Made by a program: the position numbers and the translations under genes | Notes under the pieces: generated by a model | What the model was told of the DNA's origin: nothing | Databases searched by the model: none | What the model saw: the letters and a program-made list of their open reading frames with translations, nothing else | Shown: in pieces, positions 1,116 to 9,228 of the stretch | How positions within the stretch are numbered: the stretch's first letter is position 1 | Layout: each line of letters begins with the position of its first letter | DNA from: Amoeboaphelidium protococcarum X5 | Lineage: Eukaryota; Fungi; Aphelidiomycota | DNA length: 64,000 bases | NCBI GenBank assembly: GCA_023515725.1 | Contig: JALDTO010000208.1 | Span: forward strand, 840,534-904,533 | Reading direction: 5' to 3'

Positions 1116-1314
1116 CCTTGGTTACTGTACTTTTTGGCGTTTAGCAAAATGCTGAATGATTAAAATGATCAAAAGAGGGAAAATGTCCAATTTTCAAGAG
1201 ACCGACCTGACCTCTCAAGGTAAGTTATAAACATCAACCAAAAAAAAAGATTGAAGCTAATTAAAATACTTTGATTTACAACAGATATTAAATTCAATTA
1301 TATGTACCTGAATA

Positions 1315-2844
1315 TCAGCATTGGAATTTAGATACACCGACTATGGTCCAACACTAAGAATCAGACAAGGAGTCGACATCGGCTCTAACACGAGAAGATG
1401 GACACAAGGCAGTGAGTGGCAGAGATACTGACTAATCTTGATCAGCCCGGCTAGTACCTAGATATTTAATAGCGTGCCCATTTTATGATACTTCAACGAC
1501 TTACAGTGCCACCCGATGCATTTAGCTCACGTAACAATCAGTCTGCTGCGAGTCCAAAATCACTTGATTGTCCTTTCCCAGTCTGACGATCCTGCAAACA
1601 ACATCCATATTCATTGCATCCGTCTCCACAGGACTGAGGACAACATGTGTATTGTAAGCGATCGGTGTGCCAGCAGGTGCGTAAACTCTCGAACCATCAC
1701 GGCAAGTAAGCAGGGAACGAACAATCATGGGGGTCCAGTCTTGAGAGTCAGCAGTTAAGTGTCGTCGATGCTATAACTGATTCTATGGCAATGTCTACCC
1801 AACATTTATATAACGCGTTCGCACATTTTAACAATTGATACGGTTAAAAAATGCTACATTATCACCACATAGAATGGCACCCACAGGTGCTTTGATACCG
1901 GGCCGACCCAATGAAGCAGTCTGACCATGCTGTTTAGATTTGGTAACTTTCTTGGAAGGCTTTGATATAAGCTAGATGTTGCACGATAAAGCTTCATATA
2001 TCTCGCCATCAACATTTGCACTAAGTTTTAGATTAACATGACCAACTTTAAGGTTATCATGACCAGATTGCGACGACCGCTGGGTAACAGTGGACGGAAC
2101 ATGGAGAGACTTGAATGAACACGTTGCCATACCATTGGCAGGCAAACTTATCTTACTCAACTGATCAGCTGCCGCAATCTCTAGGCTATTGATACTCAAA
2201 CCCAATCTGAGAACACCATGAACGTTCTTACCAAATCTTGACTGGTCAGATACGACTATTTTTGGTGGAGGACACATAAAACGCTTCTCTTGTCCATAAG
2301 ATTTCTAGACAACAACCGCGTGCCAACATTCAAAACGATAATGATAATCTCTTGGAGTATAATCTCCAGACAAAGAGGAGATTGAATCTTGTATTGAAGC
2401 AGGTAGAGCAACAGGATACGGCATCTAAACAGCGCACAGTCTAGGAGACGGAGTTGGTGCAATCTATGGAGGCGAAGCATAACCGGATCTTCTATCACAA
2501 TCCGAAACAACTGAAGATGCATCAGACGATGTATATTCATCATGTGGAGTTTCTGTGTAGAGCAGATTCTAAATCGCTAATCGGTTGCTATGAAACTGGG
2601 GACGATCCTTTGATAAGCAATCTTTGCCAGATAATGGAGATCCTTAAGCGTTATCAGCAGCTTCAATAGCCATCAGAAGAACATCAAGACCAGTCTGCTA
2701 TTATTGATGCGGCACAGGAGCGGTGTTCACACAGATACGTTTCGTAATAACTGACTCGCTATGATCACCAGAGTCGAGACACCGCTTCAACAAGCCAGAT
2801 TAAGCGAGCGGTAGTGACACTTAGGCAGAAGCAGGTGCAATCAT
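1315..2844 (-). CDS. CSL (CBF1/RBPJ/Su(H)/Lag-1) family transcription factor, LAG1 DNA-binding + beta-trefoil domains
   Basis: Single ~509-aa frame with CSL signatures VVQKSYGQEKRFMCPPP, IQLISKPSKK and VAFFNRINCQNVRTRYI; low-complexity N-terminus as in fungal CSL proteins. Start codon inferred. Confidence 0.88.
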
Positions 2845-2939
2845 TATTTATATACGGAAAGACTGAGTATTATTATATCCCACAATAGCTGATGGATAGA
2901 ATAAAGAAGTGAGTGAACAAGTAATGACGATAAAGAGCC

Positions 2940-3339
2940 AGTGGGAAATATTTGAGGCAAGCCGTGTGAAAGATCGATTGTGATTTTCAACAATCGTGTG
3001 GAGTCAACTCCGCCTGCGTGATTTTCCGTTTCGTCGGTTCCCACGATTGTAATGGCAGCGCTGGCAAACAAAGGCACCTTGATGAAGCTTATAAGACATT
3101 CACTCCCGTATATTAATTTGACATTCAAATATGGAAGATGATAGTGACTAAATAAAAGGTTAGTGTTGAAGCCCGTATAAATAGACAGACATGAAGCTTG
3201 ATTTTTACGATGCATCAAGGTTAGTGTGAGAATCATTGTTGGCGTGGGAACAGCTGATGCTCATCGATCGATGGGATGGCGTGTGAAAACTTTCCTCGTC
3301 ATCACATCATCAAATTTTCACACGGTGATTTTTCACACG
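2940..3339. promoter_or_regulatory. Cluster of CSL-type binding sites (GTG[G/A/T]GAA) upstream of the CSL gene
   Basis: AGTGGGAA 2940, CGTGTGAA 2963, TTCCCACG 3038, TGTGAGAA 3225, CGTGGGAA 3243, CGTGTGAA 3280, TTCACACG 3317, TTCACACG 3332. Confidence 0.75.
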
Positions 3340-3444
3340 CATAATTACTATCACCGTCTACACAACACACAACGATCATCAAAGAAGCTACTAAATCAAC
3401 TATAATCATAAGAAGCAAGAAACATTCATTGTGATCAAAGAGAT

Positions 3445-4509
3445 TCAAATTTACATTGTAAGATGCTAAGGTACTGACTTGGAGTCATCATCGACTAAGT
3501 ACTTGGCAATGATCTCCTCCGAGAGCCATTGCTATCCAATTTACATGTGACCGCCATCTTTGGTGAGTAAAATCAGGCGATCGCTCTCATCCAACTGTTT
3601 CAGACCAATCCAATCATCCTAATACAATTCAGATTCGCGTAATGACACTAAGCGCTTACCACTATCACTCCATTGTCCAAACCAGGCAGTTTCTTTAGGA
3701 ATAGCCATGGTGTCATTGCTGAACATCACCAATACCAACTTGTTTAACTTGAGCATATTGTTCTTGTAAGCTTCATTCTTGTCGGCTTTTTCATTATTGA
3801 TGTCTGGCAAAAATATGTTGGACCATAAGTAAGAATCCAACTACTAAATATCACGATAGTATTAGGCCTGAATCACGCGGGATTGAACTTGAGGCAAGTA
3901 TACACCCCTCTTGATTGCCATCCTAGCCAAGCTACACCACCAAGAGCTTTAGACAACATCGTTAGAATCTTCTCCTATCAGTGTCTCTTGTATCTCATCA
4001 CAATTAGGCATAGCAGATTATCCGCCGTGCTGAGAGCCAAAAGTGATCAAATTATAAACTTGAACAGAGTTGCAACGCTCAATGTATGCCCTCAAAGCCT
4101 ATCCACCTTGTGAGAATCCGAGAGCATTAACACCTGACGCTTTTAACAAATCCAAATCAGCCTACGATACTGGTTTCATGGTGCGCAAATTAATCACATT
4201 GACGCCTGAACTCGATTTACCATTCATAACATAACACAATCCCTGTACCTGGTCATTCAGATTGCCAAAGAAGGAAGCCTTTTAATCGGAATCTGCACTC
4301 CCATCACCGATTTGCACAGAGTAAACATTAACATCTGGTAACTGATCCCATATCTATTTGGCCACACTTACCATTGATCTTTCGTTACAACAGCTGTCGC
4401 CCATACCATGCCACAGCAACACTGGTTTTCCCTGTTATGACGCGTTAATTACACTCTAAGACAGAGCTATAATAGTCAATATAACAATTTTTACAGACAC
4501 CATAGCCAT
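3445..4509 (-). CDS. PPT1: Palmitoyl-protein thioesterase 1 (secreted/lysosomal)
   Basis: Signal peptide, then PVLLWHGMGDSCCN, FLPDINNE, YKNNMLKLNKLVLVMFSNDTMAIPKETAWFG, LYQDDWIGLKQLD; TGA at 3445-3447. Confidence 0.92.
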
Positions 4510-4789
4510 TTATTAGTAGAATTTTGGTCAATTCTAAACAGAAAGAATTAGTACAAAAGACTAAATTTTTAGAAATATTTAAAGCACCTCCTTAACTGAA
4601 ATAGATGTGTGTGATTGGAGCACAATTTAGTCACCTTTGGTAAAGCCATAATAACACGCTCGGAACTTCAGCTACCTACCACAAGATTTTCGTTTCAGGA
4701 ACTGTCAAAATTCCGCAAAATATCTTTATAGAGAGAAGCAAGGATTATAGTGTAAATATCAAGTATGTCTTTGTATCTGACTCTTTTAA

Positions 4790-7525
4790 AACAAATAAAA
4801 CGCTTGTTTTCTTTTGCACCGGTAGTGTTTTGCACCTTGCACCCGGAGAAACGCACCGAACTCGCTTTGTTACAATCTCGACCGTCTCGCATGTCTGGCA
4901 GGAAGCGTTCTAGAGCAGTGTAGAGTGACTCGTAGCCATCTGGAGGGGGTATCACCACCTCCAACAGTAGTACTGGCATCCCAGCCGTTGATGAGTGTGC
5001 TGGTGTTGGCAGTAGTGTCGGCGTATCCGCCTCCTCAAGTTCTGGTCTGGCTGGGTGCGAGGCTGAAACAAGTGTTGTTAGCATGAATCAAACTGCTGAT
5101 ATCACTTCACAAAGTTCTGCTCAAGTCAGTGCTGCTTTCAATAGGTAGCTGGAGAATGAAGATGAAGATGACGACGACGATTACGACTCTGATGATGGTC
5201 TGGATGATGAGCAGTTGGCGAAGAAGGTGAAGAGACGCAAGAAGTCGGAGAACAGCCATGTGTATCGCATTGAAGCGGCGTACAAGTATAAGCTGGATGA
5301 AGGCATTGGAGAGACGTTGAAGCTGCTGAGGTTGACTCGATCCGACGTATCTGTGCCACTCACTGGCGGTAGGCCTTTGGCTGTGAATAGTATGTAAGCC
5401 TACTAGAAGCATTACAGAGGATTGCGGTACTTTTTTGCGCTAATTGGTGACTACAGCTCGAGTTTAATGCTGCTTCCTAACCCCCCGCAGTACACACCGT
5501 CAATGAACGCCAAGAGCATCATTTTGTTTATCAAGTTCAAGCGTAATGAGAAGGGTTCTTTGCTAAAAGACGAGAATGGCAACGCTGTGAAATGTGTCTA
5601 TGGGCACGATATCAAGTGCTAGGGTGGTTGGAATATGCCACAGAATGTTGACCAGTTGTTATCGGCTGTCTCTGTGCTGCATGATAGTCGTAATTAGAGG
5701 GGGGAGTACAGAGATATCTGCGAAGAGTGCATCCAACGTTCTGAGCGTGGTGATAGATCTGGCTGTCGGTTCCATCCGATGGCTCCTCGTATTTGGCTGG
5801 GTGGAGATCCAAAGAATTCTTCCCTCATGACTAACATGTAGAGATTGAACTCCCGCGATGGATGCAGCTACGTGTCCGAAGGCAGCTAGCCGCTCACACC
5901 TTGGGAATTACTACGTCTCCGCGAGTATTTCATCTCGAAAAATGATGCGAAGTCATTCATGATGTGGACGATGATTATCGTTAGTATCAAGCTATTTCTG
6001 CGCAATGATGAAGTCACCGATTTGAAAATTCATGATCCTAGGCTGGAAAATTGTCTCAACAAGGATCTTGCGACCTTTCAAAGTGATGGCAGTATATCTT
6101 CCCTTGCTTTCTACATTAAAGGCAAGTCTGATCGTGTTAGAGTGTGCTTGACTCTTTGGACGGATTATGATGTGCCCGAATTGTGCCCGGTTCGTGCGCT
6201 TTTGACGTGGATTTTTATTTCTGGGATTAGAACTGGATTCTTGTTCCCTCAAGAGAGTACACTGGATGCTGTGAAGCAAGTTGGGCATGCGGCGTACAAC
6301 ATCTCTTACGTATCTTATCATAGGCAGTATCAGAAAGCTTGTAAGATTGCTACCGGCAATCCCGATGGTAAATTTGGTACGCACACTAGTAGGAAGACTG
6401 GCTATTTGCTTGCTGTTTGGGGAATGGGATCAGAGATTGACATCACTAAGAGTGCGCGACACGCTTCGTCCGCTAATGCCGCATTGTATAAGAAGGATGC
6501 TAGCTATTTGCTAGAATTAGCGAAGACTAGACGTTTGGACGTGTCTTCCGTGGTAAGCAAATTCAGATCAGCCTACTGTGAGTAGCTATAGATGGCTCGC
6601 AGTCTGAATGCTGCCCATTCTAGAGGCAATTTTTGTCTGCAGCAGGTGAGTCAAGAGATTGTTCGTAGCTTATGTGGATTATCTGATGTTGATGCAGTTG
6701 GTGGACCTAGAGTGATTTACGATGCACTTCTCCAGTTGCAGAAGAAAGAGACTGTGCTGCAGCTTATTGAGGCAAAGTTGAAAGAAATTGCACCTAATGC
6801 CACTCCGGAGGAGATTAATGAGCTGCGTAGGATGCTTGAGCTTTATGCGAATGGATTGATTGCTGCCACTCAATCAGCTAAGTTGAAGTAGCCAAAATCT
6901 ACTCTGACTTCTCAATAATCTTCTTCCAGATAGTTACGTGAACAAGCTGCGGTTCACTCTGATGATGAACTCTATGAATCCGATGAAGAAGACACTGACG
7001 TAGCTGATGTTGTACCTGCCATCACAGCTGTTCAGTAGGATGAAGTTGTGAATGATATGCCTGGGAGAGAGAAAGTGAGAAAAGCGAAGACTGCCATGGC
7101 GAAGTTGGAGGCCATTCTTGCAGTGGATGATCCTGGCTCAACCGTCGGGTTATCAGCTGGCGCCAAATCATTCTACGTGAAGCAATACTGCCCGATCATG
7201 AAATGTCTGAGAAAGCACTTTGGCGGTGATTTGGATAAGTTCATCGCACATTGGGGGAACTTCAAACCAACTAGCTTCAAGACAAACAATTGCTCTGGTA
7301 CCATGGATGAGTGTAGTATTTGAACAAGACAGATAATATGGAGACTGAGATTGAAAGTGGATTTAATACAAAAAGTTTAATGCAAAATCATTGAGGATTT
7401 GTTTGAAACAACTGACTTGTCTGTTTTCTGCGAGATCACCGTCGCGCGCTCGATCGCTCGCGCATTCTTCCAACGTCAACCTTAACGGTTTCCGTTTTTG
7501 CACTTTGCACTTTTAACAATAAGAG
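4790..7525 (+). mobile_element. Putative Crypton-like tyrosine-recombinase DNA transposon (ends approximate)
   Basis: A single YR gene is bracketed by near-identical direct repeats TTTTGCACCTTGCAC (4828-4842) and TTTTGCACTTTGCAC (7496-7510), with an extra TTTTGCAC at 4812. No RT, gag or DDE transposase. Confidence 0.65.
4891..7323 (+). CDS. Tyrosine recombinase (phage-integrase fold), 810 aa, intronless
   Basis: One frame from ATG 4891 to TGA with ~15 TAG/TAA read as Gln. Catalytic set: LFLR(6001)NDEV, KGKSD, CPVRAL, GTH(6382)TSRKTG, ARH(6460)ASSANAALY(6487). A CEEC..GCRFH putative Zn site lies upstream. Confidence 0.88.
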
Positions 7526-7974: not shown

Positions 7975-9228
7975 TCATTCGCTCCCGGCAACTTATGCCA
8001 TCTCTTTTAAATAACGAACTATAAACTCATCACCGATAGACTGAGCAATCTTTGTGGATTATTCAGCAATTTTGATAGCCTTGGCAGGATGAGTGACGCG
8101 GTAGATCTGAGACAGAATCATTAGAGATAGTGCCTGCTCTTACTTGCATGAAGATTTTACGGATTACAGTAGACATTGCTTTGCTTTATGATACTATTCA
8201 TTAAAGTAAAATCTAGCACCATCTATCAATGGCAACGTATTAGTGTCATTTGTCATATCCTAATTGTCCACAGATAGAACTTGCATCTGGTGTTCAATAA
8301 AGGCTCTCAAATCTGCGCCTACCGCATGATCTGTCGACAAAATTTGAAATGCATTACCAGCTTCCTAAAATTTCGCGTTCGACTGCAGCCATAACGCTTC
8401 ACATAGCGTCACTATCTGTTACTCACATTCTGAGGAAATCAGATTCAAAGAGTCTTAAGCGTCAGCAAGTCTGCGCTGACGTAGTTACACTAAATAGATG
8501 GCAAGGACTAATCTGGATTTGATAGCTCTCATGGTAGACAGATCTTGTTGAGACTAGCATACACTTTCTTCCAATAGTTTCAATCCTTCAGCCCCAATCT
8601 CATCATTATTAAATGCAATACATGACATCAAAGATACTAAAGCGTTTAAAGCAGCTACAGACATGCAACTAAAGTTACCATTCAATAAGGTTCCATCGTA
8701 ATTAGCAATTAAGCTCTGCAATTCTTGCACAACAGGCTTGAACAATTTCACGTCATTCATCACTGATATACATTGTGGGATAAGTGAGTAGATCTTGTCT
8801 TCAATATCAAATGCATCTTTCATGTACTACTTGCATAGCGTGATGATTTACAAATCTTGCTTTGATTGGGCCTGTTTCAGAACTTCTTTACAATTCTGTT
8901 TCAGCAATTTCGTGTCGCCATTCTGATAGAATAGCTGCAGTTTGAATTTATTGACTTCCATTTGCAATGTATAAAAAGTTTCAGCAGACTATGCAGATTT
9001 CTTTATCAGCATTTCCAGTTTGCAGATATATTCTAAAACCATGGCTGATGGTTCAACAGCGTAATTGGATATCAACTCCAAGAATCTTAGATAAGCATTA
9101 ACATACGTAACGAGATTTTCATTTGCCACAGCATTATCAATGAATATTTTGTATAGATAGCATGCTTCAACGTGTTTACCATAATGTAAGCAAGATTCTG
9201 CCAACTGAATAAGGCTTTAATATTTCAT
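7975..9228 (-). CDS. TPR/helical-repeat protein, probable cohesin loader subunit MAU2/Scc4-like
   Basis: Long frame with TAR=Gln. The N-terminus (LIQLAESC) and C-terminus (FYFNEQYHKAKQCLLQSVK..QALSLMILSQIY..STKIAQSIGD) resemble MAU2. 5' end uncertain. Confidence 0.5.

Follow-up and report, generated by a model that had tools for sequence, protein, structure and literature searches.

The transcription factor CSL is known above all for its place at the nuclear end of the Notch pathway, and what role it had before Notch existed is not a settled question. The locus described here brings that question to Amoeboaphelidium protococcarum X5, an alga-parasitic, fungus-related protist: does a CSL gene of this organism carry, in its own upstream region, the sites through which CSL proteins would control it? 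We analysed a 64-kb stretch of the 23.6-Mb genome (hereafter the window; C207:840534-904533, window position 1 being 840534), and coordinates given without a prefix are window positions. Eight CSL-type sites lie within 400 bp upstream of a minus-strand gene of the CSL family, CSL-A. With somewhat better than even confidence, we read this 400-bp stretch as a CSL-bound homotypic cis-regulatory module of CSL-A, giving auto- and/or cross-regulation.

Eight CSL-type sites upstream of CSL-A

A pattern search of the window for YGTGDGAA returned exactly seven exact matches at 2963-3339. An eighth site, AGTGGGAA at 2940-2947 on the plus strand, has the core GTGGGAA with A instead of Y at position 1. 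All eight sites fall within 400 bp (2940-3339) upstream of CSL-A and occur in both orientations, as a first-pass annotation of this DNA had described (seven YGTG[G/A/T]GAA matches plus AGTGGGAA). That annotation placed the start of the cluster about 100 bp upstream of the start codon, and the nearest site indeed lies 93 nt from the ATG at 2847. The first base is C in six of the eight sites, and half of them (4/8) read CGTGTGAA, in agreement with the earlier statement that this is the most frequent variant.

Counted away from the gene, the cluster begins with site 1 (AGTGGGAA, 2940-2947, plus), site 2 (CGTGTGAA, 2963-2970, plus) and site 3 (CGTGGGAA, 3038-3045, minus), all of which lie in the probable transcribed leader and are identical in a second copy of the locus on C146. 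Site 4 (TGTGAGAA, 3225-3232, plus) is located about 52 nt upstream of the end of an RNA-like contig and is followed by a pattern match on the same strand, site 5 (CGTGGGAA, 3243-3250, plus). Site 6 (CGTGTGAA, 3280-3287, plus) stands head-to-head with another pattern match, site 7 (CGTGTGAA, 3317-3324, minus), across a 29-nt spacer. Finally, site 8 (CGTGTGAA, 3332-3339, minus) is a direct repeat of site 7, with a start-to-start distance of 15 nt. A heat-shock or MSE-like identity of the motif was discarded on inspection.

The remaining 63.6 kb of the window contain nine scattered YGTGDGAA matches, giving a window total of 16 against 13.8 expected from shuffles. Genome-wide, we counted 3671 matches in 23.65 Mb, or 1 per 6.4 kb, which is close to the earlier estimate of roughly one per 5 kb. 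The reversed control pattern gave 3861 matches, so the motif as such is not enriched in the genome. What stands out is its clustering: the computed expectation for clusters of seven sites within 400 bp is about 3e-7 by chance in the whole genome.

We then surveyed the genome for pairs of CGTGDGAA sites 0-30 nt and 31-60 nt apart, a survey confined to sites with C at position 1. Direct pairs at 0-30 nt were found at 19 places (reversed control, 0), head-to-head pairs at six (reversed control, 1) and tail-to-tail pairs at none (reversed control, 0). Pairs 31-60 nt apart showed no excess over the control anywhere in the genome outside the CSL-A locus. The first-pass annotation had proposed a genome-wide count of motif density as a check on the cluster; counted by CGTGDGAA pairs, no similarly dense cluster exists outside the CSL-A locus and its C146 copy. 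These two are the only places in the genome with more than one close pair, and each has three. The CSL-A cluster is the single densest CGTGDGAA chain in the genome, and by these counts sites are clustered at the CSL gene itself beyond chance, as would be expected of an autoregulatory CSL loop. A repeat or transposon origin of the cluster was ruled out: across the genome, the 611-bp intergenic stretch has no match besides itself and the C146 copy, and it is therefore not a repeat element.

A second repeated word was noted in the same region. Two copies of GTGATTTTC (2980-2988 and 3018-3026) lie in a perfectly conserved block of the leader, and a third, variant copy, GTGATTTTT, at 3325-3333 overlaps site 8. 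GTGATTTTC may be a candidate site for a second factor; sought as a second enriched motif, it showed no enrichment across the window at one mismatch.

CSL-A, a probable two-domain CSL gene

The CSL-A coding sequence occupies 1315-2847 on the minus strand and comprises 510 codons and a TGA stop, with no introns by the RNA-like contigs. Under the standard code, the minus strand between 1300 and 2850 is interrupted by TAA and TAG codons. When both are read as Gln, the code reported for A. protococcarum (PMC5304391), the frame runs uninterrupted between the ATG at 2847 and the TGA at 1315-1317. With this code, 19 of the 37 Gln codons of CSL-A are TAA or TAG, and one in-frame TAG sits where all CSL proteins have Gln (VVV-TAG-KSYGQEKRFMCPPP). 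The start codon is supported by an in-frame TGA upstream at approximately 3004-3006 with no in-frame ATG between it and 2847, by an indel of 13 nt that distinguishes the two genomic copies immediately before the ATG, and by RNA contigs of CSL-A that contain no introns.

The Pfam profile LAG1-DNAbind (PF09271) matched a stop-free piece of the protein with 33.1 bits, and the score rose to 44.9 bits over profile positions 2-150 when two TAG codons were read through. The RHR-N piece aligns to chains of Su(H), LAG-1 and RBPJ, and the protein retains four conserved blocks: QKSYGxEKRFxCPPP, LISKPSKK, FNRxxxQxxxTRY and WTIV. The gene is thus a member of the CSL family, and the profile matches and conserved blocks bear out its earlier assignment.

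CSL-A appears to consist of RHR-N and a diverged beta-trefoil, and its frame ends directly after a betaC4-like strand, CWTIVGVSKFQC. No C-terminal Rel-like domain (RHR-C / TIG_SUH) was found in the frame, as the TGA at 1315-1317 leaves no sequence for it; the frame of the C146 copy ends at the same point. This makes CSL-A a probable two-domain CSL without the C-terminal Rel domain. In fungal CSLs, RHR-C often escapes detection (PMC1973085). The next gene, a small Tim-like (CX3C) one, begins some 200 nt downstream of the CSL-A stop (700-1200 region).

The sites are retained in a diverged second copy

A protein-domain search identified four CSL loci in the genome: CSL-A on C207, its diverged copy on C146, and a second gene, CSL-B, on C98 and C249. 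Because the C146 copy was found via the protein domain and not via the motif, no ascertainment bias enters the comparison of sites between the two copies. Third codon positions of the CSL-A copies differ by 15%, and their intergenic identity outside the site-bearing blocks is 66-90% per 50-nt bin. All eight sites are present in the C146 copy, while the spacers have changed.

Sites 1-3, together with the two copies of GTGATTTTC, fall in a perfect-identity block of 148 nt (2914-3061), the longest such run in 4.8 kb. A second conserved block (3224-3311), made of runs of 46 and 37 nt split by a 5-nt indel, contains sites 4-6. Sites 7 and 8 are kept in spite of altered flanks and an altered spacer, and site 8 is kept in spite of a 1-nt deletion in the adjoining T run. 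Pooled over five loci with close pairs, 0 of 96 columns changed in sites compared to 14 of 116 in spacers (P = 1.6e-4). At four of these loci, all but CSL-A, the contrast presupposes that both copies match the pattern. That all five single-copy pair loci are found in both genomic copies is a statement free of this bias. Judged from these comparisons, the cluster sites look functional. The conserved blocks are wider than the motifs, so block-level conservation alone is no proof of selection on the motifs, a point on which the difference between site and spacer columns does bear.

In the C146 promoter (L001:2950-3100, C146:332590-332770), a tandem duplication of about 100 bp adds a ninth site, CGTGTGAA. 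Its origin by duplication indicates that the number of sites is still evolving by small duplications.

Paired sites recur at the second CSL gene

Close CGTGDGAA pairs amount to about seven independent sequence families genome-wide, two of which are CSL-A and CSL-B. That two of about seven pair families are CSL genes is the strongest internal link between the motif and a candidate factor. At CSL-B, CGTGGGAAtgagCGTGAGAA is located about 75 nt upstream of the ATG in both copies, in a conserved block beside a large indel. The CSL-B protein (L011:1192-3942, L012:1465-4218) is about 917 aa long, with a long N-terminal extension and large insertions in RHR-N. Its DNA-binding blocks are near-canonical, and about 290 residues follow betaC4, with a weak TIG_SUH hint (E = 0.11). 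In these features, CSL-B resembles the long class F2 fungal CSLs.

Predicted DNA-contact residues and site preference

The putative beta-trefoil of CSL-A was placed by transitive alignment via CSL-B. The two proteins align in the QKSYGxEKRFxCPPP, LISKPSKK, FFNRINCQNVRTRY and WTIV blocks, and FFNRINCQNVRTRY of CSL-A corresponds to ALFNRVKNQNISTR of CSL-B, which in turn aligns to ALFNRLRSQTVSTR of LAG-1. Across ISKPSKK...ALFNRVKNQNISTR, a CSL-B piece of 91 aa could be aligned with LAG-1 (E = 5e-5) and with RBPJ, the blocks shared with these two spanning ISKPSKK...ALFNRxxxQxxSTR. Both CSL-A and CSL-B keep the Gln that corresponds to LAG-1 Q401 and mouse Q222, and an Arg that should correspond to mouse R218. 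This Gln forms a hydrogen bond with the base opposite site position 1, which gives C an advantage over T (PMC4176381). Mutating mouse R218, Cbf11 R318 or Cbf12 R644 abolishes DNA binding (PMC3598750); the equivalence of these Arg residues was assigned by numbering, four residues before Q222. The DNA-binding domains of CSL are RHR-N and BTD, not RHR-C (PMC1973085), so the truncation of CSL-A need not prevent DNA binding.

The contact Gln of the beta-trefoil (LAG-1 Q401) is encoded by a TAA codon in CSL-A (1828-1830). Its equivalent in CSL-B is a reassigned stop codon in one copy (L012:2719-2721) and CAA/CAG in the other (L011), a difference that provides internal confirmation of the reading of TAA and TAG as Gln.

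The cluster sites conform to the CSL response element YGTGDGAA (core GTG[G/A]GAA), with seven exact matches and one site with A at position 1. The first-pass annotation suggested that the frequency of CGTGTGAA may reflect a shifted specificity, for which there is no need: the Drosophila site definition YGTGDGAA includes CGTGTGAA (PMC3390367), and mouse CSL was crystallised on it (PDB 3IAG, cited in PMC4176381) and tolerates all four bases at position 5, with nanomolar affinity (PMC4176381). Among the 20 conserved sites of the genome, position 5 is G in nine, T in eight and A in three, and these CSL proteins may have a mildly different position-5 preference. No longer composite motif was found in the flanks of the 20 sites, only a mild preference for A after GAA, like that of the canonical site.

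Predicted promoter and leader of CSL-A

The upstream neighbour of CSL-A is a palmitoyl-protein thioesterase gene (3445-4527, minus strand; stop at 3445-3447). Its 3' end faces the CSL-A promoter on the same strand, and the intergenic DNA is therefore the 5' flank of CSL-A only. We compared contigs of four public runs over 1300-3500: X8 and X5 (DNA), X6 (kind not on record) and X13 (an RNA-Seq metatranscriptome). The two DNA runs cover the whole interval. X6 gives joint-free coverage from 1361 to 3173, leaves 3174-3414 empty and starts again at 3415, in a thioesterase contig; X13 covers CSL-A up to 2900 and resumes at 3429.

We read X6 as RNA-derived. If so, CSL-A is intronless and has a leader of about 325 nt, probably spanning 2848-3173 on the minus strand (X6 to 3173, X13 to 2900), with an approximate 5' end and two short upstream open reading frames. 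The gap of about 240 bp without RNA-like contig coverage (3174-3414), between the 3' end of the thioesterase transcript and the 5' end of the CSL-A transcript, is likely the core and proximal promoter of CSL-A. It contains sites 4-8, which lie 52-166 nt upstream of the transcript contig end. The earlier description of all eight sites as promoter sites therefore holds for sites 4-8, in the untranscribed gap; sites 1-3, judging from the RNA-like contigs, are probably in the leader. The upstream open reading frames (2987-3124, minus strand) would begin at ATG 3124 (45 codons) and ATG 3099 (31 codons) if the leader reaches 3173, and the ATG at 3124 is lost in the C146 copy.

Interpretation of the cluster

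Taken together, the arrangement suggests a module with five sites in the untranscribed gap of about 240 bp just upstream of the transcript and three more in the leader. It would most likely be bound by the organism's own CSL proteins, either CSL-A itself or the longer CSL-B, which has a conserved pair of its own, or both. The outcome would be a Notch-free auto- and cross-regulatory circuit. Its sign we guess to be positive, the module acting as a cooperative switch. Long terminal repeats (LTRs) usually borrow activator sites. We favour activation because two LTR families of this genome carry paired sites and because S. pombe Cbf11 and Cbf12 activate a reporter carrying three CSL elements (PMC3598750). 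We infer CSL binding, the choice of paralogue and the sign of regulation from sequence features only. CSL auto- or cross-regulation is the most economical reading because the cluster is unique and constrained, the gene it precedes belongs to the CSL family, and conserved sites stand at the second paralogue.

Several observations weigh against this reading. The beta-trefoil of CSL-A gave no match to Pfam BTD (PF09270), either in pieces or in the whole-genome search, and an 82-aa piece of it found none in a PDB sequence search or in Atlas; its middle is too diverged for profile or sequence recognition. CSL-A is also without the C-terminal Rel domain, so that DNA binding by it is not assured. Animal CSL matrices under-represent T at position 5 (PMC4176381), the base that half of the cluster sites have there. 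The X6 contig breaks off exactly where an indel separates the two copies, which makes the transcript 5' end approximate, and, the kind of this run not being on record, its RNA origin is a reading. Part of the conservation may stem from leader or upstream-open-reading-frame function, from general promoter constraint or from a short gene-conversion tract. As for orthologues elsewhere, a JGI metagenome scan with a 110-aa RHR-N piece confirmed no locus, and a word-based protein search with the same piece returned no match; in-frame TAA/TAG codons limit the usable pieces to at most 110 aa, so these searches did not extend to relatives of full length.

The features that make CSL-A a questionable binder could also mean that the module is functional but read by CSL-B only. 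CSL-A would then be a downstream target, in cross-regulation or a feed-forward arrangement, and itself a poor binder or an effector-less competitor. The near-canonical blocks of CSL-B that align to LAG-1 and RBPJ, and the weak TIG_SUH hint at its C-terminus, speak for such a division of labour, as do a CSL-A BTD invisible to profile searches and a protein that stops after betaC4. The two S. pombe paralogues offer a precedent, being antagonistic and unequal in binding strength (PMC3598750, PMC3516552). We nevertheless hold an exclusive role of CSL-B to be improbable. CSL-A keeps QKSYGxEKRFxCPPP, LISKPSKK and the DNA-contact Arg and Gln of the FNR block, DNA is bound by RHR-N and BTD and not by RHR-C (PMC1973085), and CSL-B has sites of its own, so that both loops may coexist.

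The motif could also be a genuine promoter element that some unrelated factor recognises. Only by coincidence would it then fit the CSL consensus and stand at both CSL genes. An 8-mer can be common to unrelated factors, the other genes with conserved pairs (sestrin/RhoGEF, glycerol-3-phosphate dehydrogenase and C1-tetrahydrofolate synthase) are not obviously those of the S. pombe Cbf11 lipid regulon, and GTGATTTTC in the conserved block hints at further factors. Set against this are the details of the motif, whose degenerate position 5 (G, T or A; never the sole variable elsewhere) and preference for C at position 1 match the known CSL site, and whose flanks hold no longer composite motif. The coincidence would further have to extend to two CSL genes among about seven independent pair families in 23.6 Mb, and we consider it unlikely. 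Least probable of all, and by our estimate very improbable, is a cluster without any regulatory role, produced by local duplications and conserved through recent gene conversion or through leader or upstream-open-reading-frame constraint. Sites 7 and 8 do form a 15-nt tandem repeat, the ninth C146 site did arise from a duplication of about 100 bp, the conserved blocks are far wider than the motifs, and two upstream open reading frames lie in the leader. Duplication, however, can explain no more than two or three sites out of eight, the rest having unrelated flanks and both orientations. The spacers have diverged with the sites unchanged, one of the two upstream ATGs is missing from the second copy, and four further promoters have kept the paired motif.

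Comparison with known CSL systems

The closest parallel to the predicted regulation of CSL-A by CSL proteins is S. pombe cbf12. Cbf12 binds its own promoter in chromatin immunoprecipitation on microarrays (ChIP-chip) and autoactivates, native Cbf12-GFP rising more than 3-fold on ectopic expression (PMC3516552). In both cases, a CSL gene of a Notch-less holomycotan is apparently under CSL control, and each genome has two paralogues, one short and one long with insertions (PMC1973085). The aphelid case differs in being known from sequence alone, and its dense cluster stands at the short, truncated paralogue, not at the long one. No array of consensus sites like this one is described in the S. 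pombe study, which mentions for gsf2, a Cbf12 target, only 6-of-7 matches within 900 bp (PMC3516552).

Drosophila offers a second parallel. The Su(H) autoregulatory socket enhancer (ASE/ASE5) carries five high-affinity YGTGDGAA sites (PMC3390367) and is likewise a homotypic cluster of CSL sites at the CSL gene itself; the site definition is the same, and both orientations occur. Unlike the aphelid cluster, which is promoter-proximal, it is positioned downstream of the gene, depends on Notch signalling for its start and requires inputs from Vvl and box A/B. Animal Notch targets carry Su(H) paired sites (SPS), in which two head-to-head sites are 15-17 nt apart (PMC8494340). Sites 6 and 7 share the head-to-head arrangement, but an SPS architecture was ruled out here, as this only head-to-head pair in the cluster (3280+, 3317-) has a spacer of 29 nt.

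A search for the Notch LNR domain found none in the genome, and the same search matched no control genome either. The absence of Notch therefore rests mainly on published knowledge of fungi, which are reported to be without other Notch pathway components (PMC3598750).

In S. pombe, lipid-metabolism promoters to which Cbf11 binds contain a motif resembling the canonical CSL element (PMC4569565). Such an element at a metabolic gene has a possible counterpart here in the mitochondrial glycerol-3-phosphate dehydrogenase candidate. Compared to the Cbf11 regulon, however, the aphelid candidate set is small, is defined by paired sites only and has no clear lipid-gene overlap.

The first-pass annotation inferred a Notch-independent CSL autoregulation that operates in a unicellular holomycotan and may predate Notch signalling. 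This was overstated, since CSL self-regulation without Notch is already known from Cbf12 (PMC3516552). New here are a predicted aphelid instance, its unusual density and a putative node formed by the truncated paralogue. The hypothesis that this locus provides is unusually clean and defined by sequence, and it concerns a relative of fungi that branches deeply. Clustered CSL sites are few in this genome, strongest on one CSL gene, followed by those on the second CSL gene, in a few promoters of metabolic and growth-control genes and in the LTRs of two retrotransposon families, all of them direct candidate targets. If binding is true, this would be a second, independent case of CSL self-regulation in the fungal lineage, with a small candidate regulon to compare with the targets of S. 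pombe Cbf11 and Cbf12. The locus offers a good experimental entry point and does not overturn current understanding.

A bolder picture, possible though rather unlikely in our view, would make CSL auto- and cross-regulation an ancestral Notch-independent trait of aphelids, fission yeast and animals. Here, a truncated CSL (RHR-N and BTD) would be switched cooperatively via eight sites, competing or cooperating with its full-length paralogue, and the two LTR families would have captured paired sites to ride on the switch.

Other loci with paired sites

The remaining conserved pairs lie at a few single-copy genes and in two retrotransposon families. One is placed in the divergent promoter shared by a sestrin (PA26) gene and a RhoGEF gene, between both genes. 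Another is found upstream of a mitochondrial-type flavin adenine dinucleotide (FAD) glycerol-3-phosphate dehydrogenase with EF hands. The pair upstream of C1-tetrahydrofolate synthase (C1-THF synthase; L008:3713-3744, equal to C98:13212-13243, and C244:373346-373377) is head-to-head with a 16-nt spacer and is identical in both copies. This geometry is SPS-like, in an organism without a known Notch partner.

Both retrotransposon families are Ty3/gypsy-like. The first has LTRs of 241 bp that are 99.6% identical (L009:3713-3953 and 8640-8880) and accounts for six pair places genome-wide; the second has LTRs of 266 bp that are 100% identical (L010:2316-2581 and 7122-7387, corresponding to C207:2316-7387) and accounts for five, these counts including both LTRs of single elements in some cases. 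In both families, the pair of CGTGDGAA sites is located 55-98 nt into the LTR and runs antisense to the element.

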